A DNA stretch of 64,000 bases from Macrostomum hystrix (taxonomy: Eukaryota; Animalia; Platyhelminthes), in the NCBI GenBank assembly GCA_950097015.1, contig CATNEN010000034.1, positions 3,286,001 to 3,350,000 of the forward strand. The letters are read 5' to 3'. This document shows positions 2,702-64,000 of the stretch, in pieces. Every line of letters begins with the position of its first letter. Position 1 is the stretch's first letter. The position numbers were made by a program, and so were the translations under genes. The notes under the pieces are model-generated. The model saw nothing but the letters and a program-made list of their open reading frames with translations. It was not told where the DNA came from and searched no databases.

Positions 2702-5700
2702 TCAGCCCTGGCCCACCTCGCCCCGATCTGTCTGGAAGGGCAGCTCGACCGTGTACAGGCTGGCAAGGCCGCAGTGCCGGGAGTTCATCAGCGCGATAAA
2801 GTCGCGTAGTCGGTAGAGCTCGCTAACCTGGTGAAACTCGGCCAGCAGGACGTGGGTGAAGGTGCCCCGCGCCATGGCCCGCCTGTAGAAGGTGATTCGG
2901 CGCAGGCTGCTCCGCTGCTGTGGAAGGAGGCCATTCAGGATGAACTCGGCGCCGCTCCACTCGCGCCAGTTGGTCTCCATGGAGGCCGCATTGCCGAGCA
3001 CCTTGCAGCAGACGATGATGTAGACGGCCTTGTCCGACAGAGGCGCGCGGCTCAGATCGCGCAGGCCGGCATCGTCCGAGTCGGTCCAGATGGTGCACAG
3101 CTCCTTAAAGCCGCCTGCAGTGTGTATTGATGTTCTTGACTTAATAATAATAATAATATTTGCAGGACGGCTGCGGGCAATGGACCATCATTTGGTGACA
3201 CTAGACCCGCAGCCAGCGAGGAGGAAACCCCCCCCCAAGCCTTCTCTCCGCGGCTGCGTCTCAATTTAATGTGGCCTCGCCACGAATTCGAGCTCGGGAA
3301 CCTTGATGAGTCGGATGCATCACCGCTCCGCCACTCAACCCCTGGCAGTCCAATTTAGCCCAGCCTCTCACCTTGATGATGCACCTGATTCTCGCCGTGG
3401 CCCTCGCGTATCACCTTCACCCAGGACGGGTCGTGTATGAAGGTGTTGGACGGATGCAGGTGAAAAACTGTGTAACTAAGGAAGGGAAATCGATCTGAAA
3501 CAAGGAAGAATTAATTTGCAGCCAGTAGATTCACAGTTCTTCACATTGCAAGATTGTCTTTACCATATTCTTCAACGTTTCTGAGTAACACTCCGCTCAG
3601 AAACTGAGGGTGCATCTTCATCACTTTGGACACGTGAACGAATCCGTCTTTGAATGTAGGAAAATTTGGAGGCGGCGTAATCGTTTCGAAGAAATTGAAT
3701 ATCGAGTACAGGGCATCCGTTGATTTCTCTGATCGGCCGTCCTCCTGCACAATTTAGGACACGGAAGCAGCCTAATTGCAAATTATGTTTGCGCAATTAG
3801 TTGGGCACGCGATTTTAAACTAATCAGATACATTCCTGTGAATGAATGCAAAGTGCGATCAAGAGTCTGAGTGTTTTAGTGTCAGAGACAGGGCCAAGAT
3901 CAAAGACAGAATCAAAGACAGGATCAGAAACAGAGCCGGAGACAGAAAGAGAGACAGAATCAGAAACAGAGCCGGAGACAGAAAGAGAGACAGGAGCAGA
4001 AACAGAGCCGGAGACAGAATGAGAGACAGGAGCAGAAACAGAGCCGGAGACAGAATGAGAGACAGGAGCAGAAACAGAGCCGGAGACAGAAAGAGAGACA
4101 GGAGCAGAAACAGAGCCGGAGACAGAAAGAGAGACAGAATCAGAAACAGAGCCGGAGACAGAATGAGAGACAGGAGCAGAAACAGAGCCGGAGACAGAAA
4201 GAGAGACAGGATCAGAAACAGAGCCGGAGACAGAATGAGAGACAGGAGCAGAAACAGAGCCGGAGACAGAATGAGAGACAGGAGCAGAAACAGAGCCGGA
4301 GACAGAAAGAGAGACAGAATCAGAAACAGAGCCGGAGACAGAATGAGAGACAGGAGCAGAAACAGAGCCGGAGACAGAATGAGAGACAGAATCAGAAACA
4401 GAGCCGGAGACAGAATGAGAGACAGGATCAGAAACAGAGCCGGAGACAGAATGAGAGACAGGAGCAGAAACAGAGCCGGAGACAGAAAGAGAGACAGGAT
4501 CAGAAACAGAGCCGGAGACAGAATGAGAGACAGGAGCAGAAACAGAGCCGGAGACAGAAAGAGAGACAGGATCAGAAACAGAGCCGGAGACAGAATGAGA
4601 GACAGGAGCAGAAACAGAGCCGGAGACAGAATGAGAGACAGGAGCAGAAACAGAGCCGGAGACAGAAAGAGAGACAGGATCAGAAACAGAGCCGGAGACA
4701 GAAAGAGAGACAGAATCAGAAACAGAGCCGGAGACAGAATGAGAGACAGGAGCAGAAACAGAGCCGGAGACAGAATGAGAGACAGGAGCAGAAACAGAGC
4801 CGGAGACAGAAAGAGAGACAGGATCAGAAACAGAGCCGGAGACAGAATGAGAGACAGGAGCAGAAACAGAGCCGGAGACAGAAAGAGAGACAGGATCAGA
4901 AACAGAGCCGGAGACAGAAAGAGAGACAGGAGCAGAAACAGAGCCGGAGACAGAATGAGAGACAGGATCAGAAACAGAGCCGGAGACAGAATGAGAGACA
5001 GGAGCAGAAACAGAGCCGGAGACAGAAAGAGAGACAGGATCAGAAACAGAGCCGGAGACAGAATGAGAGACAGGAGCAGAAACAGAGCCGGAGACAGAAA
5101 GAGAGACAGGATCAGAAACAGAGCCGGAGACAGAATGAGAGACAGGATCAGAAACAGAGCCGGAGACAGAATGAGAGACAGGAGCAGAAACAGAGCCGGA
5201 GACAGAAAGAGAGACAGGAGCTGAAACAGAGCCGGAGACAGAATGAGAGACAGGAGCAGAAACAGAGCCGGAGACAGAATGAGAGACAGGAGCAGAAACA
5301 GAGCCGGAGACAGAAAGAGAGACAGGAGCAGAAACAGAGCCGGAGACAGAAAGAGAAACAGGATCAGAGACAGGATCAGAGACAGGATCAGAGACATAAT
5401 CAGAGACAGGATCAGAGACAGGATCAGAGACATAATCAGAGACAGGATCAGAGACAGGACCAGAGACAGAGCCGGAGACATGATGAGAGACAGGATCAGA
5501 GACAGACTCAAAGACATGATCAGAGACAGAGCCGGAGACATGATGAGAGACAGGATCAGAGACAGACTCAAAGACATGATCAGAGACAGAGCCGGAGACA
5601 GGATGAGAGACATGATCAGAGACAGGATCAGAGACAGGATTAGAGACATAATTAGAGATAGGATCAGAGACAGACCCAAAAACTGGATGAGAGACCGAGC

Positions 5701-9042: not shown

Positions 9043-12000
9043 ATGAGCCGAAAACCGAAATCAAAGCTCCCCCCTACTGACTTAGATGAAGATTCATTTA
9101 GTAATCTTTCGAAAGCTGATTCCTACCAGAATGCTTTGTCTGATGACAATAATGAGTTCTCTGGTAAGATGATTTGTATCATCGTAAACAAAAATTTTAT
9201 AGCTTATTTGAACTTTAAAGCATGTTCTGAAACATATTGCATTGTTCATTACCTATTGACAGATGCCGATAGCCTAATGAAGTCAATTCTGCCTCCCGAG
9301 CTTCTAAAAAAGGTTGGAAAATTTCCAAGCAGCAAGGGATCCAACTCGAAGAGAAAATTCGACCAGTTGTCTTTTAGCAGCTTTGGCAGCGACATAAATC
9401 CGGATAATGCAAAATCTAACACGAAGAGTAGCGCCAGTAAGGCTAGAACTAGAAAGACGTCCCAGAACAGCCTTGAAGATATCCTTGCCGGGTTGAGTGA
9501 CGATGACGATGACAACCCGCCCACTGATCGCCGTAGCGCAGCCAGAGGTTCCGCCGACGTCGCTGGCTCATCGAAATCGCATGGTCAGCCTTTCGGCCAA
9601 GAGTCGAAGAAGTCAAAGAGAGTGACAGCTGGTCAGGAGAAATCTTCGTCAGTCAGCTCTAAGTGGGCCCATAACTTGCCGCCTATGCCGCCATCTCCAA
9701 CTATCTCGCTGTCTCCTTCGATCCCGTCGTCTCCACCGTCTCATCGCCAAACGTGGGGTCAGGAGTCATCCCGAGTTCGAGACTCCACCAGCGCCTACTC
9801 AAAGTCTGGCCGGCACCAGACGACTCAAATGGCCGAAAATCGATCGTGCGCCTCTGTGCGCTTTGCGCCAGACACTAATCTTGGCGTTGAGAACGAAGAA
9901 CTTGATTTCAACGACTCAGAGTTGGACAATCTGCCGCAGTTTCCTGGCGCGGCAAACAAGCTCAACCGGTCCGATCGGGCCAGCGTTCAGCAGCAGCAAG
10001 ACCGGCTGGACAAGCCCCAGCGACCGCAGCGCCAGCCAGACCACCGCCAGCCATCGATGATGCGGTCGCAGCGCCAATCGGAACACGGCCAGCAAATGAT
10101 GATGCAACCTCAGCGCCAATCGGAAAACGGCCAGCAAATGATGATGCAACCTCAGCGCCAATCGGAACACGGCCAGCAAATGATGATGCAACCTCAGCGC
10201 CAATCGGAACACGGCCAGCAAATGATAATGCAGTCGCAGCGCCAGTCGCAGCAGCAGCCTTCTGGCCAGTTTTCGTTCGAAATGCCTAACATGGACTCTG
10301 AAAGCTCGCAGAATCCGTACGTTTTTAAATATTTTTTCTGTCGTTTTCTCTTCAATTCTCAAGTGTTTATATTCTTAAACTATTGCTAAACATCTAAAAG
10401 CGATACATAACGCAAAATGGAACATGCATTACCAATTGATACGGCGATCATGGTTTCATATTTTAATATCACACTTCCGTGGTGTGCAGGGCCCCAATGA
10501 GCGACGAACATATAGCCAAACTGAAGGACTGGGGCCAAAGAATTCGTCAGTGCATCTTCCAGTCGAATATGGCGATTAAGGAGAAGGTGAATAAAACTTA
10601 TCCTTTATTTTTACTGTCCGTGCTGACCTACTATGTCAATTTTCAGCATCTTTATACGAAAGAAATCCAAAAGTTCACTTTAAATGCAATAATTAAATAA
10701 TAATTAAATAATTAAATAATTAAATAATTAATGCAATAATACCCCGCCGGCTTTGTTAACCCCTTGGGTTTTCACACTTTTATTTTCTCTCTGCTCTGTC
10801 TGCCCCTCATTCTGTCTCAGCCAACCAAAGATACTCAAGTCCAACAGCTCTTTCGTACTGTCGTATGCGGACTCTGGCTAGTTATTAGTTTCTTTGTCTG
10901 CATTAATTTGTCTGCAATAATTTTTGTAACTGCAGAAGGGCTGTGGGCTCTGTCACATTTTTGGTGCCACTAGACGCGCAGCAAGTGAGGAAGCAATTGC
11001 CCTCGCTGATGTCTGATCACATGCGCACACAGATACTGTACGCACGAACACGCTCACACAGGTGTGTACATCTGCATCTGACTTTCTCATTGTCAGGCAT
11101 TTTACACTTCGGGGAGATTGGCCCTGAAGGGCGTAAATTTTCCTCAAGCGGCTGAGCCGCTAATAATAATTTTAGGCAGAATATAAACTAGACAATATAT
11201 GCTTTGGCTGCAGTGTATAAAATTTATATAATACAATATGTAATGTCGCTTTCAGGAAACTGAGATAGCCACCAAAAACAGCACTATCCGAACTCTGCAA
11301 GAAGAGAATGCAAAGCTAAAGGTAATTCGCATTGTATCAACAGTTTTTATACAGATAACACATGCCAATTTTCTTGAGTCCTGAATTACTCCTAAGCCAA
11401 AGCTAAGAACAGCTTTAATGATCCATCATTATTGCTCCAATATTTAAATATTCAATTTAAGAGAGACTCCGAGCTCACCAACATTGGATATCAGAGCGAG
11501 AAGGATGGTCGCACGTCCATCGAAAAGCGGTTAGTTAATCGAGCTGAAATGTTTGGTTATTATATTAAAAAGAGCTTTTCAAATGACACAATAATTCTGT
11601 TCGCTCAAACTCTTCGAATTTTTGTTTCTAAAGAATCAATGGTCTGCATCACCTCTGCGTCGGCCTGAAAGACAGTGCGGTGTCAATGGACTCCGTTGTG
11701 AAAGCGGGTAAGGCTAAAATGTTTCACTTTGTCAATAGACGATTCACAACTTATGTTTATTATCTATTAAATTAGAAATACAAGCATAGTTTTCCAAATG
11801 AAAAAATCCTATAGTGAAGAGTGCATTCGGCAACTCCAAGCTAATAGTGGAGAAATACCAAGCCAGTCTGAAATCCGTTGCTGCCTCGCTTGTCGAACTG
11901 GAGAAAAATCTGGCTGATAGCAAGGCTATCTGGCGCGAGAAATGTATAAACACTTTTTATTACATTCCTATTTTAATTTATGGTTAGAAATAAACTAGTC

Positions 12001-24744: not shown

Positions 24745-25490
24745 TGTAAGGTGGCTTGTGGAGTGAGGTGGCTTGTGGAGTGAGGTGGCTTGTGGAGTGA
24801 GGTGGCTTGTGGAGTGACGTGGCTTGTGGAGTGAGTTGGCTTGTGGAGTGAGGCGGCTTGTGGAGTGACATGACTGGTGGAGTGAGGTAGCTGGTGGAGT
24901 GAGGTGGCTGGTGGAGTGATGTGGCTGGTGGAGTGAGGTGGCTGGTGGAGGGAGGTGGCTTGTGGAGTGAGTTGGCTTGTGGAGTGACATGACTGGTGGA
25001 GTGAGGTGGCTGGTGGAGTGAGGTGGCTGGTGGAGTGACATGACTGGTGGAGGGAGGTGGCTTGTGGAGTGAGTTGGCTTGTGGAGTGACATGACTGGTG
25101 GAGTGAGGTGGCTGGTGGAGTGAGGTGGCTGGTGGAGTGACATGACTGGTGGAGTGAGGTGGCTGGTGGAGGGAGGTGGCTTGTGGAGTGAGTTGGCTTG
25201 TGGAGTGACATGACTGGTGGAGTGAGGTGGCTGGTGGAGTGAGGTGGCTGGTGGAGTGACATGACTGGTGAAGTGAGGTGGCTAATGGAGTGAGGTGGCT
25301 TGTGGAGTAAGGTGGCTTGTGGAGTAAGGTGGCTTGTGGAGTAAGGTGGCTTGTGGAGTGGCATGAGGTGGCTTGTGGAGTGAAGTGGCTGGTGGAGTGA
25401 GGTGGCTGGTGGAGTGAGGTAGCTGGTGGAGTGAGGTGGCTTGTGGAGTGAGGTGGCTGGTGGAGTGATGTATCTGCTAGAGTGAGGTGT
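24745..25490. repeat. GGAGTGAGGTGG-family 18-bp minisatellite
   Basis: Units gtggagtgaggtggcttg / gtggagtgaggtggctgg / gtggagtgacatgactgg, about 40 copies. Confidence 0.93.
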
Positions 25491-29400: not shown

Positions 29401-32400
29401 AAAAATCTCAATTCAACAAACTGCAGAGTCAATGCGGGCTCTTATTTTATATTTTAGTTCCAGTTTTGACCATCAGTTCGAGTTTTTACCGCTTGCTTCC
29501 TTATAGCAGCTCTTAAATTTCTCTATTTTTTTCTTCTAACCTGACTCTATTGCTGCAGCACAATGTCCCCAAATTCGGACCATCGTGCTGATACTTTGTC
29601 GGCAAACTCATGCAATTGTGGGCAACCGATTTTTATTTCTATGCGTCAGTGGCAGCAATAAATGCCGCTTCAATAAATAGCAATCAGAATTTTTTTAGTT
29701 TCTCTTTAACAATTTTATTATTTGATTTTACAGACCTGGAGCATACAATAGGAAATCTTTGGCCCACCCAGCTAGTTATCCCCAGACCAAGGGCTTTCAA
29801 TTCGTTCTCCAAATGTAGCCAAAATGAAAGTTATGCTGCTCATTTTGGCGCCGGAAATCCTCACTTAGATCCCAAAAAATTGAGCAAGAAAATGTTTTTT
29901 TTCGCCCAGTTTCCAGACAGACTTTGAGAATAGGTCACATGTCAATGAAATTTATTCAATGCGGCTGGACTGCTTCCTGAGTTAAATGACTGCTGCTATC
30001 TGCACCTGGAGCGACACTGTGGCTGTCAACAATAAACCAAATCATTTACAGTTTATTTAAATCCTGCTTGGAGTACTGGCCTAATGTAACAGATGCCAGT
30101 ATCTGGTACTGAATGTAATTTGTGATTTGAATATCCGGCACAAACATGCCATCCTGTAATTTAACTGCGTGTTATGACCGGGACAATACACTTTAATTTC
30201 TGCACCGTTCTTTTGAATTAATCCCCATTCTACTGAGCTTTCTAACTTAGAATCGCAGCAAGAGCCACAACTAGAATCGCAGCAAGAGCCACAACTAGAA
30301 TCGTAGCAAGAGCCACAACTAGAATCGCAGCAAGAGCCACAACTAGAATCGTAGCAAGAGCCATAACTAGAATCGCAGCAAGAGCCACAACTAGAATCGC
30401 AGCAAGAGCCACAACTAGAATCGCAGCAAGAGCCACAACTAGAATCGCAGCAAGAGCCACAACTAGAATCGCAGCAAGAGCCACATCTGGAATCGCAGCA
30501 AGAGCCACAACTAGAATCGCAGCAAGAGCCACAACTAGAATCGTAGCAAGAGCCATAACTAGAATCGCAGCAAGAGCCACAACTAGAATCGCAGCAAGAG
30601 CCACAACTAGAATCGCAGCAAGAGCCACAACTAGAATCGCAGCAAGAGCCACAACTAGAATCGCAGCAAGAGCCACAACTAGAATCGTAGCAAGAGCCAT
30701 AACTAGAATCGCAGCAAGAGCCACAACTAGAATCGCAGCAAGAGCCACAACTAGAATCGCAGCAAGAGCCACAACTAGCATCGCAGCAAGAGCCACAACT
30801 AGAATCGCAGCAAGAGCCACAACTAGAATCGCAGCAAGAGCCACAACTAGAATCGCAGCAAGAGCCACAACTAGAATCGCAGCAAGAGCCACATCTGGAA
30901 TCGCAGCAAGAGCCACAACTAGCATCGCAGCAAGAGCCACAACTAGAATCGCAGCAAGAGCCACATCTGGAATCGCAGCAAGAGCCACAACTAGAATCGC
31001 AGCAAGAGCCACATCTGGAATCGCAGCAAGAGCCACAACTAGAATCGCAGCAAAAGCCCATATGACCTACCTTTTTGGGTTGGCCTTTTCGTCTTACGAA
31101 GGCGACAAGTTTTTTTACGCGAAGAAAAACTATTTTGTTGAAATTTTTTGGTGGAAAGTTTTGATGCTGCGAATAACAGTTTCTTTAACAGTTTTCGTTT
31201 GTTCTTCTTCTTTTTCTGAATTAGGTTTGCGAAATCTTATTATTCTCGGGCCAAGATTTGGGAATAATTTCGCAGCGATACAGATTTCCCTGATGGAGGT
31301 CCTGCTGTAGCAAAGCTAAGACAAAAAGTCGTGCTTGGCGAAAATCTTGACAATTATTTTGTCCAGCATTGATCCAAACCGCCCAATTGATTTCGGAAGC
31401 AGTCCTCATATCCTTCTACTAGCTAAAATTTCAAGTGTTGTTTTGGGAGGCGCAAATACAAGGATACTAATGCATTTTGCCTGTAACATCGGCATCATTG
31501 GATCCAATCGATATAGTATGATACAGCATCAATACAGCTCATGGCAGCTCATTACAGCTTTATACAGCATCCGCTCATTACAGCTTTATACAGCATCCGC
31601 TCATTACAGCTTTATACCGCATCCGCTCATTACAGTTTTATACAGCATCCGCTCATTACAGCTTTATACAGCATCCGCTCATTACAGCTTTATACAGCAT
31701 CCGCTCATTACAGCTTTATACAGCATCCGTTCATTACAGCTTTATACAGCCTCCGCTCATTACAGCTTTATACAGCATCCGCTCATTACAGCTTTATACA
31801 GCATCCGCTCATTACAGCTTTATACAGCATCCGCTCATTATAGCTTTATACAGTATCCGCTCATTACAGCTTTATACAGCATCCGCTCATTACAGCTTTA
31901 TACAGTATCCGCTCATTACAGCTTTATACAGCATCCGCTCATTACAGCTTTATACAGTATCCGCTCATTACAGCTTTATACAGCATCCGCTCATTATAGC
32001 TTTATACAGCATCCGCTCATTACAGCTTTATACAGTATCCGCTCATTACAGCTTTATACAGCATCCGCTCATTATAGCTTTATACAGCATCCGCTCATTA
32101 CAGCTTTATACAGCATCCGCTCATTACAGCTTTATACAGCATCCGCTCATTACAGCTTTATACAGCATCCGCTCATTATAGCTTTATACAGTATCCGCTC
32201 ATTACAGCTTTATACAGCATCCGCTCATTATAGCTTTATACAGCATCCGCTCATTACAGCTTTATACAGTATCCGCTCATTACAGCTTTATACAGCATCC
32301 GCTCATTATAGCTTTATACAGCATCCGCTCATTACAGCTTTATACAGCATCCGCTCATTATAGCTTTATACAGTATCCGTTCATTACAGCTTTATACAGC

Positions 32401-35400: not shown

Positions 35401-38400
35401 CTATCTCGTGGGTGATGGGACAGAATGGATTGCTAGTCTATCCCGTGGGTGATGGGACAGAATGGATTGCTAGTCTATCCCGTGGGTGATGGATGAGAAT
35501 GGATTGCTAGTCTATCTCGTGGGTGATGGATGAGAATGGATTGCTAGTCTATCCCGTGGGTGATGGGACAGAACGGATTGCTAGTCTATCCCGTGGGTGA
35601 TGGGACAGAATGGATTGCTAGTCTATCCCGTGGGTGATGGGACAGAATGGATTGCTAGTCTATCCCGTGGGTGATGGATGAGAATGGATTGCTAGTCTAT
35701 CCCGTGGGTGATGGGACAGAACGGATTGCTAGTCTATCCCGTGGGTGATGGGACAGAATGGATTGCTAGTCTATCCCGTGGGTGATGGATGAGAATGGAT
35801 TGCTAGTCTATCCCGTGGGTGATGGGACAGAATGGATTGCTAGTCTATCCCGTGGGTGATGGATGAGAATGGATTGCTAGTCTATCCCGTGGGTGATGGG
35901 ACAGAACGGATTGCTAGTCTATCCCGTGGGTGATGGGACAGAATGGATTGCTAGTCTATCCCGTGGGTGATGGGACAGAATGGATTGCTAGTCTATCCCG
36001 TGGGTGATGGGACAGAATGGATTGCTAGTCTATCCCGTGGGTGATGGGACAGAACGGAGGCATCGTTATGCTGCTCCGATTTGTGAAGCGCAAACTGAAA
36101 ATATTTGTGACAGGAAAAAGCATCTTTCTTGGAAATAATCGATGAGATAAAATTCGATGCTCGGACAAGAAGCGAATTTTGCGGATCAATGGGAGATTAG
36201 GAACTGGGCGCAGCGGGTTAAAGAAATCCCACTTGGGAAATCGCTGCGCGTGGGATTTTAGAAATACAACTGTGAAGCAATTAGTGCCAAATACGAAAAT
36301 TTTCTACTCGGAAGCGGAACCAGAGAAAATAATTACCGAAATGGGCTGCGGCGGGCCTTAGGCACTGCCGGCTATTGGCAAATCTGACGATAAGCCCTGC
36401 TAAGGGGTTCTTAACTCTCTCAGATTCTGCTCACCAAATCCCCACTGCTAAGTAAGGTCTCGACTAGTCCACTTTGCGAGATCAGAACGGACCCCCACCC
36501 GAAACCCCAGAATCTGCACTGCTGCCGCGTAATTTGGGATGACAGGAATGAGACTGCTTGGGTCTCTAGTGGATACTGAGCTTGGGAAACTAGCTGGTTG
36601 GAGTGAGAAAAATGAGAGTTCCGTTTTGTTTGATTTCGCTCCTTCCGATTGACAACACAGACTCCCAGAAAAGACAGACTACCATAACAGACTGACAGAC
36701 AACCCTGAACAGACAGACATCCAGAACAGACAGACATCCAGAACAGACATACATCCAGAACAGACAGACACCCGGAACAGACACCCAGAAACCAGGACGG
36801 GACTCCAAAACTCACCCTGAGATGCCGCTCAAGCGAGTGAATGAAGGCCTTGAGACTCTCTGGCTCATATTCCTGGCCGTCCTTCTTCCTAGCCTGGCTA
36901 ACGAAGTCCCGAAGATGAGCGTCCAACTCTTCAGCCGGGATGCTCTGCACGTCGCGCTGATCGCCGCGCACCTGTTGAATAAATCGGCAGATGACCTTCA
37001 TGTCCGACTTGGTCTTGCGCATCGTGTTGTGCACCCCACCGCCACCGCCGCCGCCGCCGCCGGCTCCGCCTGGACTGTTGTTGTTGTTGGCGGCATCCGC
37101 TGCTGCAGCAGCCGCGGCGGCCGCATTAACTGCCGCCGATGACGAGGTAGTTGACGATGATGAGGAGCTGTTGTTGACGGAGCTCACTGGCTGCTGCTGC
37201 TGCTGCTGTGAGCGGGCCTTGCCACCGCCTGGAATTCGAAGTTCATCGCTCACCAAATACATTACCGCTGGGTAAAATAAAGCAACTGGCAATCAAGAAT
37301 GTTGTTCAAGGGCTGAGATTCGAACCCCCGACCTCTAGGTCAGGATTCCAAAGCTCTAACAGCTGGGCTACAGATAGAAACAACAGTATCTCTAGTACAA
37401 AGCATCCAATGCAAGTTGCCAATCTGAGAATGAATTCGATTGCATTTTGTCAATCTGAAAAAACAGTAGGCAATTTGTTATTTCAGTCTAGTCTAAATCA
37501 AAGATCAACTTTTTATCAGGAGTCAAAGAGGAAGGGGGGAGTGTCAAATATGGGACTGGCGGAAGCTGTTTTTTATCCCACACGCTGAGCTGCCCGCACA
37601 GACAATGCCGAACCGAGAGCGGCGCTTCAAATTTCCGAGAAGTCGAACCGAAGAAATCATTCAATGCGGCAGACAGCCTGGCACCAGACGCTTCCACCGA
37701 GGCATGGAGCTCCCCGAAGGCGGCATTAAAAAGCGGCGCAGTTGACAGGGCGGCGGCTGTACCGTGGCGCCAATTATGCAGTTTTTCTAGTCTGCCAGAT
37801 CCTATTCAGCTGCTATTGTTTCTCCTTTTTCCACTATAATCTCGACTCAAAAAGGGAGGAAAAAACATCTAATAAAAATCGGCACAACAAAACTGTTGAT
37901 AGGAAAAGTTGAAAACGTCTTTATCAAACTGGCAGACTGGCTGAAATTCATTGTGTTTTTTATTAATGCCACTAGCCTTTGACTCAGGAAATCCTCTCCA
38001 CTCACCTTGCAGTTGAGGGGCAGCAGCGTCTAGGCACGACTCGGAGCCCATTGGACTGTCGTCGGCCGTCTGCTGCTGCAGCTCCAGAACTGGCGGCAGC
38101 TGCTGTGGCAGCGGCGGCGGCAGCAGGGGAAGCGGCAGCGACGGCTGCTTTCTGCCGTCCAGGCCTGCAACGGCGGACACCGCGGCCGGACCGAAGCCGT
38201 GCGCCGCGGTCATGTGTGCCTCCAACTGGCGGAGGCTGCGGGCCGGCGAGCCACAGATCAAGCACTGAAAGTCAGGCAGGCCGATGCTGCCGCCGCCACC
38301 GGCGGCCAAACCCGCGGCGGCCGCCATCAAACCGAAATGAGTGGCCGCCGGATGAGGCGGAGGCGGCGGCGGCGGCGGCGGAGGCAGCGGCGGAGCTTGC

Positions 38401-53893: not shown

Positions 53894-54580
53894 AGCTGTT
53901 TTTATTCACAGTCCTGTCCAGCATCTGCTTAGCAGGTTGAATATGTGAAATCAAACCAGCTGATGGTTCATGGCGCATTGGCGGCTGGTCTCTCCTTTTA
54001 TTCCAAGCAAGCTAGTTAAACTCAGAGCCCTGACTGAAGTTAATGCGACATGGCTCCAAGCTACATCCCAGTCATGAGTTAAACATGTTGAGCATAGATG
54101 AGTATGCATAAGGCAGTATTTAGCTTACCATCGCGTGCTCAAACTTGATGCTCAAATTCACGGAAATTCAATCGGCTCCCTTTTCCAACGCCTGCTTGTC
54201 ACACATTGTGGAATCATTCTAGTTTCCGACTCAGAAAAATCTCAGCTTTGAGTTGCTAAGGCTTTGTCAAGCTTTAGTGCTTGATATGCGAGTCAAAGTC
54301 TGCGTTCAATACACATTTTTAAGTTAAAGATGCAGCATGCAATTGTTTGAGCTAACACATTTCTGATAGCCCAATTGCAGTTGCTATAGCTTACTGCTAG
54401 ATTCTGACACATTGTCATTGAGGTTTTATTTCTCGAACAGGTATTCCGGATATAACTAGGTAAGCTGCTTAACTGCCAGGGCAACTTTGCACTTGATGAG
54501 AAAATTTCGAGTTTATGAATTGTTCCAGTGTCCCATGGATACAGGCGGTGTGTACATTGACAGCCTCTGAATGTACTGCC

Positions 54581-56840
54581 TTAACCGTAGTTGATGGGGT
54601 CAAAGTAGCTTGTTCCCTTTTTGTTGTACAGTCGCTTGCCGTAGTTGATGGGATCAAAGTAGGCTCGCTTCTTCCCGTAGTTGATGGGATCAAAGTAGGC
54701 TCGCTTCTTCCCGTAGTTGATGGGATCAAAGTAGGCTCGCTTCTTCCCGTAGTTGATGGGATCAAAGTAGGCTCGTTTCTTCCCATAGTTTATGGGATCA
54801 AAGTAGCCTCGCTTCTTCCCGTAGTTGATGGGATCAAAGTAGGCTCGCTTCTTCCCATAGTTTATGGGATCAAAGTAGGCTCGCTTCTTCCCGTAGTTTA
54901 TGGGATCAAAGTAGGCTCGCTTCTTCCCGTAGTTGATGGGATCAAAGTAGGCTCGTTTCTTCCCATAGTTGATGGGATCAAAGTAGGCTCGCTTCTTCTC
55001 ATAGTTTATGGGATCAAAGTAGGCTCGTTTCTTCCCATAGTTGATGGGATCAAAGTAGGCTCGTTTCTTCCCATAGTTTATGGGATCAAAGTAGGCTCGT
55101 TTCTTCCCATAGTTTATGGGATCAAAGTAGGCTCGCTTCTTCCCGTAGTTTATGGGATCAAAGTAGGCTCGCTTCTTCCCGTAGTTTATGGGATCAAAGT
55201 AGGCTCGCTTCTTCTCATAGTTTATGGGATCAAAGTAGGCTCGCTTCTTCCCGTAGTTGATGGGATCAAAGTAGGCTCGTTTCTTCCCATAGTTGATGGG
55301 ATCAAAGTAGGCTCGCTTCTTCTCATAGTTGATGGGATCAAAGTAGGCTCGTTTCTTCCCATAGTTTATGGGATCAAAGTAGGCTCGTTTCTTCCCATAG
55401 TTTATGGGATCAAAGTAGGCTCGCTTCTTCCCGTAGTTTATGGGATCAAAGTAGGCTCGCTTCTTCCCGTAGTTGATGGGATCAAAGTAGGCTCGCTTCT
55501 TCTCATAGTTGATGGGATCAAAGTAGGCTCGCTTCTTCTCATAGTTGATGGGATCAAAGTAGGCTCGCTTCTTCCCGTAGTTTATGGGATCAAAGTAGGC
55601 TCGTTTCTTCTCATAGTTGATGGGATCAAAGTAGGCTCGCTTCTTCCCATAGTTGATGGGATCAAAGTAGGCTCGTTTCTTCCCATAGTTGATGGGATCA
55701 AAGTAGGCTCGTTTCTTCCCATAGTTGATGGGATCAAAGTAGGCTCGTTTCTTCCCATAGTTGATGGGATCAAAGTAGGCTCGTTTCTTCCCATAGTTGA
55801 TGGGATCAAAGTAGGCTCGTTTCTTCCCATAGTTGATGGGATCAAAGTAGGCTCGTTTCTTCCCATAGTTGATGGGATCAAAGTAGGCTCGTTTCTTCCC
55901 ATAGTTGATGGGATCAAAGTAGGCTCGTTTCTTCCCATAGTTGGTGGGATCAAAGTAGGCCCTCTTCTCATCAGCAGCAATGTCCGCAGTCTCCAAGCCG
56001 TCAGGCGAGGCGTCCGTATTGTCAGCCTGCAAATTGCACATGTTCTAGGATTGCACAACCCTCAAAGTTAGGATGTTTTTGCTTCGAGGGTTGGTTCCTA
56101 GAGTTGAATCGTGCTTAACTATCAATTTCTGGTTATAGAAGGTGCTTAAAAATGTTCAGTCGAGTGGCTTCGCCCTCTTGAACCATCATGGATAATTATG
56201 CTTTGGCAGGGACTTCCACACTTCAATTTGATGAGGCGTTTCAGGAATCTCCGTGTTGCCTGGGGACACTGTGGAGACAAGGAGACTTGGAAAAGCAGCA
56301 GGAAATGATTAGCGTTGGAGGCAAGCTGGTTATTTTTTTAAACAAAAAGTTGAGCACAATGCTTACTTATTTCACGCGGCCTTGGCAGCAGACTGTCTCT
56401 ATTTTTAAGCTCATTTTCGCATGCGGGTCCCGCACTAGCATTGTCTGGCTAAAGAGGACTAAAGAGGTAATCCCTAAGGAGGCCTGCCTGCTTCTCCAGA
56501 GATTAATGACAGGCTTAGACACAGGGAGCATTGTAGAAATTTCTCACACAATGTAGTATTTTCCCCGCTGAAGAAACGCTGCCTTTTTCCTGTCTAACGG
56601 ATTTCGTGAAAAGCTGTGTAAGATGGGATTGTGTAGACTAGAAAATTCACTGGATGCTATTGTGGTGAAGGTGACACGGGTTTGTTTGGACCATGGGAAA
56701 AAGTTCCATTAGAAGACTTTCTGTCGATGAAAACTCACCTCTGCAGAGTCGGCCTTGACGGCGAGAGTAAGGCAGCTCAGCAGCAGCAGAAGCAGCAGCA
56801 GCAACGGCAGCGATGGCAGGGGCGAGCTAAACTGGGCCAT
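54581..56840 (-). CDS. Neuropeptide precursor (prohormone) with about 38 copies of AYFDPINY-amide, about 515 aa
   Basis: Exon 1 is 56840-56739 (signal peptide MAQFSSPLPSLPLLLLLLLLLSCLTLAVKADSAE, donor GAG|gtgagt). Exon 2 is 56026-54581 (ttgcag|GCT, phase 0): acidic spacer ADNTDASPDGLETADIAADE-KR, then (AYFDPINYG-KKR)n, ending SYFDPINYG*. Basic cleavage sites and an amide-donor Gly recur in register with no frameshift. Confidence 0.93.
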
Positions 56841-57057
56841 GTTGGACAGAACGACAGGCGAAAATGAGTGAGCTCGAGTTGAGTTGAGGTCTCAGCCTTG
56901 TCACCGTGTGGTGGGGATGTGAAAATGCGCCACGGGGTGGAGCCTCATCAGCTCTGCACGGAGACTGGGTGCGGCCTGCGCCTGTCTTTTGAGCCCTGCT
57001 TTGCGGCCAGAGACTGCCGATTGGAGGGGCCTGGCGATTGGACAGCTGCCACAGCTT

Positions 57058-57096
57058 GAGATAGATAGAGAGATAGATAGATAGATAGATAGATAC

Positions 57097-57135
<39 letters not shown>

Positions 57136-57164
57136 TATAGATAGATAGATAGATAGAGAGATTA

Positions 57165-57205
<41 letters not shown>

Positions 57206-57240
57206 GAGATTAATAGATAGATAGATAGATAGATAGATAG
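57058..57240. repeat. (GATA)n microsatellite
   Basis: Seen directly. Confidence 0.95.
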
Positions 57241-57611
57241 AATTAGCCGATGATTTGTAGTACTTTTTAATGTATTTCCCATCGATAAAAATACGCGAAG
57301 AAAGACAAGCATGTTTTTATTATTTTAACCTGATTGTGCCGGCTAAATCAAAATATTTTGTCAGGAATCGGATGAAGCAGATTATTTTGATTTAATCCTT
57401 TAGCCACAGGGCGCTGAAGACTATATTAGGATACGTAAAATGCCTTTTTATGGCGCATGCCAGGACCAATATCTCTGCCTGGCAACTGACGTGGAACCTC
57501 GCTTTTAAATGGGAATCTTAGAAGCAAAGCCGAAAAGAAAAACAAAAAACGAACAGTCCACTTAATGGTCGCCCGTTATTTTTTGCTATAATTCCTTAAA
57601 AAATTGGTTTC

Positions 57612-60600
57612 TCATGGTTTCTCATGGAGGATTGTCTTGGGACTGACTGCTTTCTCATAGAGGATTGTCTTGGGACTGACTGGTTTCTCATGGAGGATTG
57701 TCTTGGGACTGACTGATTTCTCATTGAAGATTGTCTTGTGACTGACTGCTTTCTCATAGAGGATTGTCTTGGGACTGACTGGTTTCTCATTGAAGATTGT
57801 CTTGTGACTGACTGCTTTCTCATAGAGGATTGTCTTGGGACTGACTGGTTTCTCATGGAGGATTGTCTTGGGACTGACTGGTTTCTCATTGAGGATTGTC
57901 TTGGGACTGACTGATTTCTCATTGAGGATTGTCTTGGGACTGACTGGTTTCTCATGGAGGATTGTCTTGGGACTGACTGGTTTCTCATGGAGGATTGTCT
58001 TGGGACTGACTGGTTTCTCATGGAGGATTGTCTTGGGACTGACTGGTTTCTCATGGAGGATTGTCTTGGGACTGACTGGTTTTTCATGGAGGATTGTCTT
58101 GGGACTGACTGGTTTCTCATGGAGGATTGTCTTGGGACTGACTGGTTTTTCATGGAGGATTGTCTTGTGACTGACTGGTTTCTCATTGAGGATTGTCTTG
58201 GGACTGACTGGTTTCTCATGGAGGATTGTCTTGGGACTGACTGGTTTTTCATGGAGGATTGTCTTGGGACTGACTGGTTTCTCATGGAGGATTGTCTTGG
58301 GACTGACTGGTTTCTCATGGAGGATTGTCTTGGGACTGACTGGTTTCTCATGGAGGATTGTCTTGGGACTGACTGGTTTCTCATTGAGGATTGTCTTGGG
58401 ACTGACTGGTTTCTCATGGAGGATTGTCTTGGGACTGACTGGTTTTTCATGGAGGATTGTCTTGGGACTGACTGGTTTCTCATGGAGGATTGTCTTGGGA
58501 CTGACTGGTTTTTCATGGAGGATTGTCTTGGGACTGACTGGTTTCTCATGGAGGATTGTCTTGGGACTGACTGGTTTCTCATGGAGGATTGTCTTGGGAC
58601 TGACTGGTTTCTCATTGAGGATTGTCTTGGAATTGACTGGTTTCTCATGGAGGATTGTCTTGGGACTGACTGGTTTTTCATGGAGGATTGTCTTGGGACT
58701 GACTGGTTTCTCATTGAGGATTGTCTTGGGACTGACTGGTTTCTCATTGAGGATTGTCTTGGGACTGACTGGTTTCTCATGGAGGATTGTCTTGGGACTG
58801 ACTGGTTTTTCATGGAGGATTGTCTTGGGACTGACTGGTTTCTCATGGAGGATTGTCTTGGGACTGACTGGTTTCTCATGGAGGATTGTCTTGGGACTGA
58901 CTGGTTTCTCATTGAGGATTGTCCTGGGACTGACTGGTTTCTCATGGAGGATTGTCTTGGGACTGACTGGTTTCTCATGGAGGATTGTCTTGGGACTGAC
59001 TGGTTTCTCATGGAGGATTGTCTTGGGACTGACTGTTTTTTCATGGAGGATTGTCTTGGGACTGACTGGTTTCTCATGGAGGATTGTCTTCGGACTGACT
59101 GGTTTCTCATGGAGGATTGTCTTGGGACTGACTGGTTTCTCATGGAGGATTGTCTTGGGACTGACTGGTTTCTCATGGAGGATTGTCTTGGGACTGACTG
59201 GTTTTTCATGGAGGATTATCTTGGACTGACTGGTTTCTCATGGAGGATTGTCTTGGGACTGACTGGTTTTTCATGGAGGATTGTCTTGGGACTGACTGGT
59301 TTTTCATGGAGGATTGTCTTGGGACTGACTGGTTTTTCATGGAGGATTGTCTTGGGACTGACTGGTTTCTCATTGAGGATTGTCTAGGAAATGACTGGTT
59401 TTTCTTGGAGGATTGTCTTGGGACTGACTGGTTTTTCTTGGAGGATTGTCTTGGGACTGACTGGTTTCTCATGGAGGATTGTCTTGGGACTGACTGGTTT
59501 CTCATGGAGGATTGTCTTGGGACTGACTGGTTTCTCATGGAGGATTGTCTTGGGACTGACTGGTTTCTCATGGAGGATTGTCTTGGGACTGACTGGTTTT
59601 TCATGGAGGATTGTCTTGGGACTGACTGGTTTCTCATGGGGGATTGTCTTGGGACTGACTGGTTTTTCATGGAGGATTGTCTTGGGACTGACTGGTTTCT
59701 CATGGAGGATTGTCTTGGGACTGACTGGTTTCTCATGGAGGATTGTCTTGGGACTGACTGGTTTCTCATGGAGGATTGTCTTGGGACTGACTGGTTTCTC
59801 ATGGAGGATTGTCTTGGGACTGACTGGTTTTTCATGGAGGATTGTCTTGGGACTGACTGGTTTCTCATGGAGGATTGTCTTGGGACTGACTGGTTTCTCA
59901 TGGAGGATTGTCTTGGGACTGACTGGTTTCTCATTGAGGATTGTCTTGGGACTGACTGGTTTCTCATGGAGGATTGTCTTGGGACTGACTGGTTTTTCAT
60001 GGAGGATTGTCTTGGGACTGACTGGTTTCTCATGGAGGATTGTCTTGGGACTGACTGGTTTTTCATGGAGGATTGTCTTGGGACTGACTGGTTTCTCATG
60101 GAGGATTGTCTTGGGACTGACTGGTTTCTCATTGAGGATTGTCCTGGGACTGACTGGTTTCTCATGGAGGATTGTCTTGGGACTGACTGGTTTCTCATGG
60201 AGGATTGTCTTGGGACTGACTGGTTTCTCATGGAGGATTGTCTTGGGACTGACTGGTTTCTCATGGAGGATTGTCTTGGGACTGACTGGTTTCTCATGGA
60301 GGATTGTCTTGGGACTGACTGGTTTTTCATGGAGGATTGTCTTGGGACTGACTGGTTTTTCATGGAGGATTGTCTTGGGACTGACTGGTTTTTCATGGAG
60401 GATTGTCTTGGGACTGACTGGTTTCTCATGGAGGATTGTCTTGGGACTGACTGGTTTTTCATGGAGGATTGTCTTGGGACTGACTGGTTTTTCATGGAGG
60501 ATTGTCTTGGGACTGACTGGTTTTTCATAGAGGATTGTCTTGGGACTGACTGGTTTTTCATAGAGGATTGTCTTGGGACTGACTGGTTTTTCATAGAGGA

Positions 60601-63600
60601 TTGTCTTGGGACTGACTGGTTTCTCATGGAGGATTGTCTTGGGACTGACTGGTTTCTCATGGAGGATTGTCTTGGGACTGACTGGTTTCTCATTGAGGAT
60701 TGTCCTGGGACTGACTGGTTTCTCATGGAGGATTGTCTTGGGACTGACTGGTTTCTCATGGAGGATTGTCTTGGGACTGACTGGTTTCTCATGGAGGATT
60801 GTCTTGGGACTGACTGGTTTCTCATGGAGGATTGTCTTGGGACTGACTGGTTTCTCATGGAGGATTGTCTTGGGACTGACTGGTTTCTCATGGAGGATTG
60901 TCTTGGGACTGACTGGTTTCTCATTGAGGATTGTCTAGGAAATGACTGGTTTCTCATGGAGGATTGTCTTGTGACTGACTGGTTTCTCATGGAGGATTGT
61001 CTTGGGACTGACTGGTTTCTCATTGAGGATTGTCTAGGAAATGACTGGTTTCTCATGGAGGATTGTCTTGTGACTGACTGGTTTCTCATGGAGGATTGTC
61101 TTGGGACTGACTGGTTTCTCATGGAGGATTGTCTTGGGACTGACTGGTTTCTCATTGAGGATTGTCTTGGGACTGACTGGTTTTTCATGGAGGATTGTCT
61201 TGGGACTGACTGGTTTTTCATGGAGGGTTGTCTTGGGACTGACTGGTTTCTCATGGAGGATTGTCTTGGGACTGACTGGTTTCTCATTGAGGATTGTCTT
61301 GGGACTGACTGGTTTCTCATTGAGGATTGTCTTGGGACTGACTGTTTTTTCATGGAGGATTGTCTTGGGACTGACTGGTTTCTCATTGAGGATTGTCTTG
61401 GGACTGACTGGTTTCTCATGGAGGATTGTCTTGGGACTGACTGTTTTTTTCATGGAGGATTGTCTTGGGACTGACTGGTTTCTCATGGAGGATTGTCTTG
61501 GGACTGACTGGTTTCTCATGGAGGATTGTCTTGGGACTGACTGGTTTCTCATTGAGGATTGTCCTGGGACTGACTGGTTTCTCATGGAGGATTGTCTTGG
61601 GACTGACTGGTTTCTCATGGAGGATTGTCTTGGGACTGACTGGTTTCTCATGGAGGATTGTCTTGGGACTGACTGTTTTTTCATGGAGGATTGTCTTGGG
61701 ACTGACTGGTTTCTCATGGAGGATTGTCTTCGGACTGACTGGTTTCTCATGGAGGATTGTCTTGGGACTGACTGGTTTCTCATGGAGGATTGTCTTGGGA
61801 CTGACTGGTTTCTCATGGAGGATTGTCTTGGGACTGACTGGTTTTTCATGGAGGATTATCTTGGACTGACTGGTTTCTCATGGAGGATTGTCTTGGGACT
61901 GACTGGTTTTTCATGGAGGATTGTCTTGGGACTGACTGGTTTTTCATGGAGGATTGTCTTGGGACTGACTGGTTTTTCATGGAGGATTGTCTTGGGACTG
62001 ACTGGTTTCTCATTGAGGATTGTCTAGGAAATGACTGGTTTTTCTTGGAGGATTGTCTTGGGACTGACTGGTTTTTCTTGGAGGATTGTCTTGGGACTGA
62101 CTGGTTTCTCATGGAGGATTGTCTTGGGACTGACTGGTTTCTCATGGAGGATTGTCTTGGGACTGACTGGTTTCTCATGGAGGATTGTCTTGGGACTGAC
62201 TGGTTTCTCATGGAGGATTGTCTTGGGACTGACTGGTTTTTCATGGAGGATTGTCTTGGGACTGACTGGTTTCTCATGGGGGATTGTCTTGGGACTGACT
62301 GGTTTTTCATGGAGGATTGTCTTGGGACTGACTGGTTTCTCATGGAGGATTGTCTTGGGACTGACTGGTTTCTCATGGAGGATTGTCTTGGGACTGACTG
62401 GTTTCTCATGGAGGATTGTCTTGGGACTGACTGGTTTCTCATGGAGGATTGTCTTGGGACTGACTGGTTTTTCATGGAGGATTGTCTTGGGACTGACTGG
62501 TTTCTCATGGAGGATTGTCTTGGGACTGACTGGTTTCTCATGGAGGATTGTCTTGGGACTGACTGGTTTCTCATTGAGGATTGTCTTGGGACTGACTGGT
62601 TTCTCATGGAGGATTGTCTTGGGACTGACTGGTTTTTCATGGAGGATTGTCTTGGGACTGACTGGTTTCTCATGGAGGATTGTCTTGGGACTGACTGGTT
62701 TTTCATGGAGGATTGTCTTGGGACTGACTGGTTTCTCATGGAGGATTGTCTTGGGACTGACTGGTTTCTCATTGAGGATTGTCCTGGGACTGACTGGTTT
62801 CTCATGGAGGATTGTCTTGGGACTGACTGGTTTCTCATGGAGGATTGTCTTGGGACTGACTGGTTTCTCATGGAGGATTGTCTTGGGACTGACTGGTTTC
62901 TCATGGAGGATTGTCTTGGGACTGACTGGTTTCTCATGGAGGATTGTCTTGGGACTGACTGGTTTTTCATGGAGGATTGTCTTGGGACTGACTGGTTTTT
63001 CATGGAGGATTGTCTTGGGACTGACTGGTTTTTCATGGAGGATTGTCTTGGGACTGACTGGTTTCTCATGGAGGATTGTCTTGGGACTGACTGGTTTTTC
63101 ATGGAGGATTGTCTTGGGACTGACTGGTTTTTCATGGAGGATTGTCTTGGGACTGACTGGTTTCTCATTGAGGATTGTCCTGGGACTGACTGGTTTCTCA
63201 TGGAGGATTGTCCTGGGACTGACTGGTTTCTCATGGAGGATTGTCTTGGGACTGACTGGTTTCTCATGGAGGATTGTCTTGGGACTGACTGGTTTCTCAT
63301 GGAGGATTGTCTTGGGACTGACTGGTTTCTCATGGAGGATTGTCTTGGGACTGACTGGTTTCTCATGGAGGATTGTCTTGGGACTGACTGGTTTCTCATT
63401 GAGGATTGTCTTGGGACTGACTGGTTTCTCATTGAGGATTGTCTTGGGACTGACTGGTTTCTCATGGAGGATTGTCTTGGGACTGACTGGTTTTTCATGG
63501 AGGATTGTCTTGGGACTGACTGGTTTCTCATGGAGGATTGTCTTGGGACTGACTGGTTTCTCATGGAGGATTGTCTTGGGACTGACTGGTTTCTCATTGA

Positions 63601-64000
63601 GGATTGTCTAGGAAATGACTGGTTTCTCATGGAGGATTGTCTTGGGACTGACTGGTTTCTCATTGAGGATTGTCTTGTGACTGACTGGTTTCTCATGGAG
63701 GATTGTCTTGGGACTGACTGGTTTCTCATGGAGGATTGTCTTGGGACTGACTGGTTTCTCATTGAGGATTGTCTTGGGACTGACTGGTTTTTCATGGAGG
63801 ATTGTCTTGGGACTGACTGGTTTTTCATGGAGGGTTGTCTTGGGACTGACTGGTTTCTCATGGAGGATTGTCTTGGGACTGACTGGTTTCTCATTGAGGA
63901 TTGTCTTGGGACTGACTGGTTTCTCATTGAGGATTGTCTTGGGACTGACTGTTTTTTCATGGAGGATTGTCTTGGGACTGACTGGTTTCTCATGGAGGAT
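57612..64000. repeat. 33-bp satellite, about 190 copies, running off the window end
   Basis: Unit atggaggattgtcttgggactgactggtttctc, with 1-bp indels near 59220, 61445 and 61860. Confidence 0.97.

Follow-up and report, generated by a model that had tools for sequence, protein, structure and literature searches.

A two-exon gene of Macrostomum hystrix with 38 peptide units is apparently an undescribed member of the flatworm NPP-26/SPP-15/SPP-16 family

A 36-bp tandem repeat in the genome of the flatworm Macrostomum hystrix spells out AYFDPINY-Gly and a basic site on its minus strand. Is this repeat a minisatellite, or is it the body of a neuropeptide precursor gene? A sequence-only reading had favored the second possibility and had proposed that a separate signal-peptide exon is joined to the array through a clean splice acceptor. 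We analyzed the stretch of 64,000 nucleotides which contains the repeat (contig CATNEN010000034.1, positions 3,286,001 to 3,350,000), hereafter called the window. All coordinates are positions in the window, and the features of the gene are collected in Table 1.

Exon 2 is indeed entered in frame after a TTTGCAG acceptor, and a GT donor is found at exon 1. Exon 2 (56026-54581, minus strand) comprises 482 codons without internal stop, and the precursor frame is intact over 515 residues (34 + 481, by arithmetic). The product of exon 1 consists of a predicted signal peptide (about residues 1-30) with a poly-Leu core and of four further residues. Its hydropathy reaches 3.8 in a 9-residue window and the signal peptide is likely cut after Val-Lys-Ala. 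Part of the gene is present in six public runs. In three of the four runs aligned (X2, X3 and X5, from two studies), a single contig each connects position 56739 to 56026; the contigs skip exactly the 712 nt of the intron, where the coverage is zero, and have 97-101 letters on the shorter side of the junction. The proposed joining of a signal-peptide exon to the array is thus borne out by contigs which behave as RNA and whose RNA status is guessed or unrecorded; the read alignment covered positions 55925-57050. The contigs run 62 nt 5′ of the ATG without an earlier ATG, and the sequence reads an in-frame stop further upstream. We conclude that the two-exon gene is transcribed and spliced from exon 1 through the start of exon 2. 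Upstream of the gene (57059-64000), an (AGAT)n tract starts at a distance of about 160 nt from the outermost transcribed base, and from position 57615 on there is a 33-bp array with more than 190 copies, so that little unique sequence is left for a promoter.

Table 1. Features of the precursor gene in window coordinates
Feature	Position	Strand	Basis
Exon 1, 5′ UTR, minimum extent	56841..56902	minus	contigs extend to 56902 in X3/X5 and to 56889 in X2
Exon 1, coding part, 34 codons, phase 0	56739..56840	minus	102 nt; contigs without mismatch
GT-AG intron, 712 nt, phase 0	56027..56738	minus	skipped in the X2/X3/X5 contigs; depth zero inside
Exon 2 start: acidic 20-residue spacer and first Lys-Arg site	55961..56026	minus	sequence; some conservation in the M. 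lignano orthologue
Peptide array, 37 units of 36 nt	54632..55960	minus	repeat and translation analysis; enrichment of silent changes
Eight-residue linker with Lys-Lys site, 38th copy (diverged, Gly-ended), TAA stop	54581..54631	minus	sequence
Candidate polyadenylation signal, first AATAAA past the stop	54425..54430	minus	sequence only

The repeat itself spans positions 54635-55968; its 37.1 copies match to 95% and contain no indels. Splitting the translation at the basic sites gives 38 peptide units, which are bounded by Lys-Arg, Lys-Lys-Arg or Lys-Lys, with Lys-Lys-Arg between the units of the array. Exactly AYFDPINY-Gly is found in 29 of the 38. Six units end in Glu instead (unit starts 55636, 55564, 55528, 55348, 55240 and 55024), one carries Thr for Ile (start 55960), one Gly for Ala (start 54808), and the diverged terminal unit has a longer N-terminus and ends with Gly-stop. 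Thus, the suggested number of about 38 holds for the units in total and not for AYFDPINY-amide, given the six Glu-ended units and the three other variants. Similarly, the prohormone grammar KKR-AYFDPINY-G is confirmed as far as the basic sites and the Gly of most copies are concerned; 32 of the 38 units end in Gly and are hence amidatable in prediction, but the Glu-ended sixth is not. Sequence coding for YFDPINY occurs 37 times in the window, always within this gene, and never in shuffled sequences.

Of all the arrays in the window, this one alone had been said to keep its frame. This is not the case, as four further arrays of the window (3904-5695, 10023-10248, 24749-25489 and 30248-31058) have a stop-free frame over their full length, and the AYFDPINY array is likewise open on the opposite (plus) strand. 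Because the other arrays are equally open, an open frame alone is no evidence of coding and we dropped it as an argument. A non-coding minisatellite with a chance open frame and a prohormone-like spelling could show the same openness. The silent changes point in the other direction. Among the distinct variant alleles of the units 6 of 10 are silent in the prohormone frame while 20% would be expected (p = 0.007), and there is no silent excess in any of the remaining five frames. Counted per copy 42 of 50 changes are silent, where the copies are not independent. Only one non-silent change is common, the replacement of Gly by Glu, and it abolishes the amidation signal of six copies. Since this bias is confined to one frame, since splicing attaches the array in frame to an exon for a signal peptide, and since the identical peptide is found in M. 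lignano behind a diverged leader and its family is known from mass spectrometry (see below), we regard a chance minisatellite as having next to no probability.

The other open frames of the region were also inspected. The 518-aa open reading frame on the plus strand (54515-56071) and the frame-shifted reading frames show no silent-site bias and are shadows of the gene. A Pfam match of exon 2 to OmdA is a repeat artefact, as no single stretch passes. The array at 10023-10248 lies within a 448-aa open reading frame (9043-10389, plus strand) and may be coding; the open frames of the arrays 3904-5695, 24749-25489 and 30248-31058 look like chance. A minus-strand open reading frame at 36420-37292 has a weak match to the QRICH1 domain (E = 9e-6), which is under the curated cut-off.

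For the database searches the two exons of the spliced model were queried separately. Among 1.84 billion representatives the top match is a protein of 2405 aa from Macrostomum lignano, UniRef100_A0A1I8IE52 (P0036), which is labelled "MMS1_N domain-containing protein" and bears no neuropeptide annotation. The C-terminal 240 residues make up a complete prohormone. The remainder of the model has no match in the window, which suggests that the annotation has been mis-fused. The orthologue has the identical peptide, the Lys-Lys-Arg spacing, a poly-Leu signal peptide and an acidic spacer, and an eight-residue linker is placed ahead of the terminal copy as in M. hystrix. It differs from the M. hystrix gene in having 16 units (15 and the terminal copy) instead of 38, in a terminal copy which ends in Glu and not in Gly, and in a diverged leader with 13 of 26 residues identical in the signal region. 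The peptide is hence conserved above the leader and spacer, as it is identical in both species with a leader that is about half identical. Two paralogues are found in M. lignano. One has four AYFDPMGY-Gly units and is labelled "Allatostatin" in UniProt (P0001), the other has five QVYFDPIDN units and is labelled "AMIN domain" (P0049). In all three M. lignano proteins the FDP-type prohormone sits at the C-terminus of a mis-fused or mislabelled UniProt model. The hallmark of allatostatin A is a C-terminal Phe-Gly-Leu-amide motif. We reject an allatostatin A identity because this motif is absent from the AYFDPINY peptide as well as from P0001 and because the allatostatin Pfam models give no match. 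Most other phmmer matches are matches of periodicity without basic sites.

The high copy number deserves separate consideration. Among the family members retrieved, 38 copies are the maximum, the others having 1-16. In this sense the number is extreme as had been stated; it is matched elsewhere, however, as the Antho-RFamide precursor of the sea pen Renilla has 36 copies (PMC7266959), and 38 copies are no record among neuropeptides. The count rests on one assembly. The precursor could be real but shorter, with part of the array being an assembly expansion or the assembly showing one allele of a locus of variable length, and the identity of units 2-8 as well as the 16 units of the M. lignano model would fit to this. 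However, there are 13 distinct unit types in irregular order, which are hard to obtain by assembly error, and in X3 and X5 the depth of single repeat contigs reaches up to about 13 times that of the junction contig, although contig depth is no copy count. We therefore consider a shorter array unlikely; such a precursor can be reconciled with the explanation which we prefer. The identical units 2-8 together with partial blocks which recur further along the array are as expected from unequal crossing-over.

To which family does the peptide belong? A profile search and a search with the start of exon 2 retrieve precursors with 1-7 peptides each from Clonorchis, Opisthorchis, Paragonimus, Fasciola, schistosomes and tapeworms, and the best named matches are from M. 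lignano, Clonorchis, Opisthorchis, Mesocestoides and schistosomes. AYFDPINY fits the core of this family, in which a single residue separates F-D-P-I from a Phe or Tyr at the end. We compared it with 54 distinct neodermatan peptides. These keep F-D-P-I almost without exception and most often have Tyr ahead of it; Ala is among the residues of position 1 and Tyr among those of position 8. Every residue at positions 1-6 and 8 of AYFDPINY is found among these 54 peptides, Asn at position 7 in none of them, and a following Gly in one.

The NPP-26 precursors of schistosomes, liver flukes and tapeworms (for example Sm-npp-26, Smp_071050) likewise consist of a signal peptide and tandem peptides of the type x-Y/H-F-D-P-I-x-F/Y between basic sites. 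One Clonorchis copy matches the first six residues of AYFDPINY, and there are schistosome copies with Y-F-D-P-I and a final Tyr. In contrast to the M. hystrix gene they have 1-7 copies, an amidation Gly is lacking in nearly all of these, and position 7 is hydrophobic and not Asn. In Schmidtea mediterranea SPP-15 gives rise to amidated FDPIQF from 8 copies, and SPP-16 to FDPIMY in amidated and free form with one Thr/Glu variant, similar to the variants of the M. hystrix array (PMC2953531); these planarian peptides have a shorter N-terminus, fewer copies and Gln or Met where AYFDPINY has Asn. NPP-26 and the planarian SPP-15 were already paired by Collins et al. (PMC2953531). Mass spectrometry has detected FDPIQF-amide and FDPIMY-amide in planarians and SYFDPIIY in schistosomes, and the Sm-NPP-26 peptides were seen as free acids (PMC2953531, PMC9495596). 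The link of the FDPI core to planarian peptides, which the sequence-only reading had drawn, was therefore right: the members of this family are called SPP-15/SPP-16 in planarians and NPP-26 in flukes and tapeworms. From sequence comparison, the M. hystrix gene is apparently an undescribed Macrostomum member of this known family. The assignment is made at the level of the family, as it is derived from 8-residue peptides and Macrostomum has several FDP-type genes (P0001, P0036 and P0049).

Literature searches for the exact AYFDPINY peptide or for the peptides of the Macrostomum paralogues returned unrelated string matches only. No FDPI peptides were found in the Platynereis and xenacoelomorph peptide catalogues as searched, scans of JGI metagenomes with a profile and with a degenerate pattern gave no matches, and the matches in the ESM Atlas were confined to generic neuropeptide precursors, each of them below 0.9. 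Several other precursors came up. One JGI sample contains a complete NPP-26-type precursor (L001:46-606, P0011). It has ten YFDPI(M/L)Y units, none of them with an amidation Gly, and is probably of flatworm origin. Unlabelled runs and metagenomes contain multi-copy precursors of an L-P-F-E-T-L-N-Y-Gly type (P0005, P0018, P0033, P0046, P0072, P0089, P0102 and others, L002-L006) with a final "IPxDGY" peptide; they have an Asn-Tyr-amide tail like AYFDPINY, and we found no paper on this motif. An uncharacterized protein of the brachiopod Lingula anatina (XP_013401647.1, P0039) has about 11 LSMDPFN(M/L)-Gly units in residues 128-250, with the same pattern D-P-hydrophobic-N-hydrophobic-Gly as in AYFDPINY. 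Our search of the supplements of PMC8557429 did not bring up this precursor.

A more distant relationship may be considered as well. The pedal peptides and orcokinins (we compared planarian PPP-1 and PPP-2 and nemertean pedal peptide 1 by eye) have a head of one or more aromatic residues, Asp, Pro/Ser/Lys and Ile, and AYFDPINY has the corresponding hydrophobic-Asp-x-Ile/Leu head. One peptide of nemertean pedal peptide 1 even starts with F-D-P-I-S-Y-G, similar to AYFDPINY-Gly. Pedal peptides and orcokinins continue, however, with several more Gly, Ser, Phe and Leu residues, and no amidation takes place at this point, whereas AYFDPINY stops at eight residues. The Gly/Ser-rich C-terminal extension with its hydrophobic end (11-15 residues in total) is absent, as the peptide ends at Gly-Lys-Lys-Arg. 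Since the C-terminal half is lacking, we do not file AYFDPINY as a pedal peptide/orcokinin member. The FDPI family could be a shortened, amidated branch of the pedal peptides/orcokinins with the Tyr-Gly end of Macrostomum as an intermediate state, an idea which we find rather doubtful given a likeness of 4-7 residues seen by eye. As a counterpoint SmGPCR20, a candidate receptor of the family (see below), is described as flatworm-specific. We found no paper which links the FDPI family to pedal peptide/orcokinin. Receptors for pedal peptide/orcokinin were not known in any phylum as of 2018 (PMC5818035), and our search of the literature from 2019 on gave no paper containing the words "orcokinin receptor". 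If the link were true, the NPP-26 receptors would be a way into this receptor question.

By analogy with prohormone biology and with the family we suggest that the gene very probably encodes a neuropeptide precursor which undergoes standard processing, is released from neurons and acts on a rhodopsin-type GPCR. The signal peptide would direct the precursor to secretory vesicles. There a PC2-type convertase would cleave after Lys-Arg and carboxypeptidase E would trim the basic residues. Peptidylglycine amidation would then convert the 32 Gly-ended units into amides, 29 of which would be AYFDPINY-amide (MH+ 1001.47), and the six Glu-ended units would remain free acids (MH+ 1131.50). After neuronal release the peptides would bind to a rhodopsin-type GPCR, as suggested by the family. 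The schistosome peptide NFDPILF activates SmGPCR9 at 1 uM in cells (PMC13367911) and a two-hybrid screen ties an Smnpp26 peptide to SmGPCR20 too (PMC10783048). The array probably grew by unequal crossing-over or slippage, which would raise the peptide yield per transcript.

The same gene structure could also give rise to a secreted peptide of glands or other non-neuronal cells, as in planarians the reproductive glands express some of the prohormones (PMC2953531). However, Smnpp26 transcripts are mainly neuronal (PMC13367911), and the precursor grammar as well as the family match are of the neuropeptide type. Thus, in our view a non-neuronal product is very unlikely. For the neuropeptide, a role in neuromuscular or reproductive control is our best and weaker guess. 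Upon knock-down of Smnpp26 the worms curl and slow down and their gonads shrink (PMC13367911), and the planarian genes spp-15 and spp-16 affect brain regeneration (bioRxiv 10.64898/2026.10.10.758126).

In summary, there is no new mechanism here. The prohormone layout and the family are already known; the Macrostomum member is apparently new. It extends the NPP-26/SPP-15 family to the macrostomids, an early-branching flatworm group, and draws attention to FDP-type genes which the public annotation of M. lignano misses or mislabels. One gene would give amidated and free-acid forms by a single Gly-to-Glu change, whereas the forms of flukes and tapeworms are almost all acids; this could allow a direct test of the role of amidation in receptor choice. 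As the family is needed in schistosomes for movement and gonad development (PMC13367911, PMC10783048) and has a role in planarian brain regeneration, M. lignano may serve as a tractable model for it.
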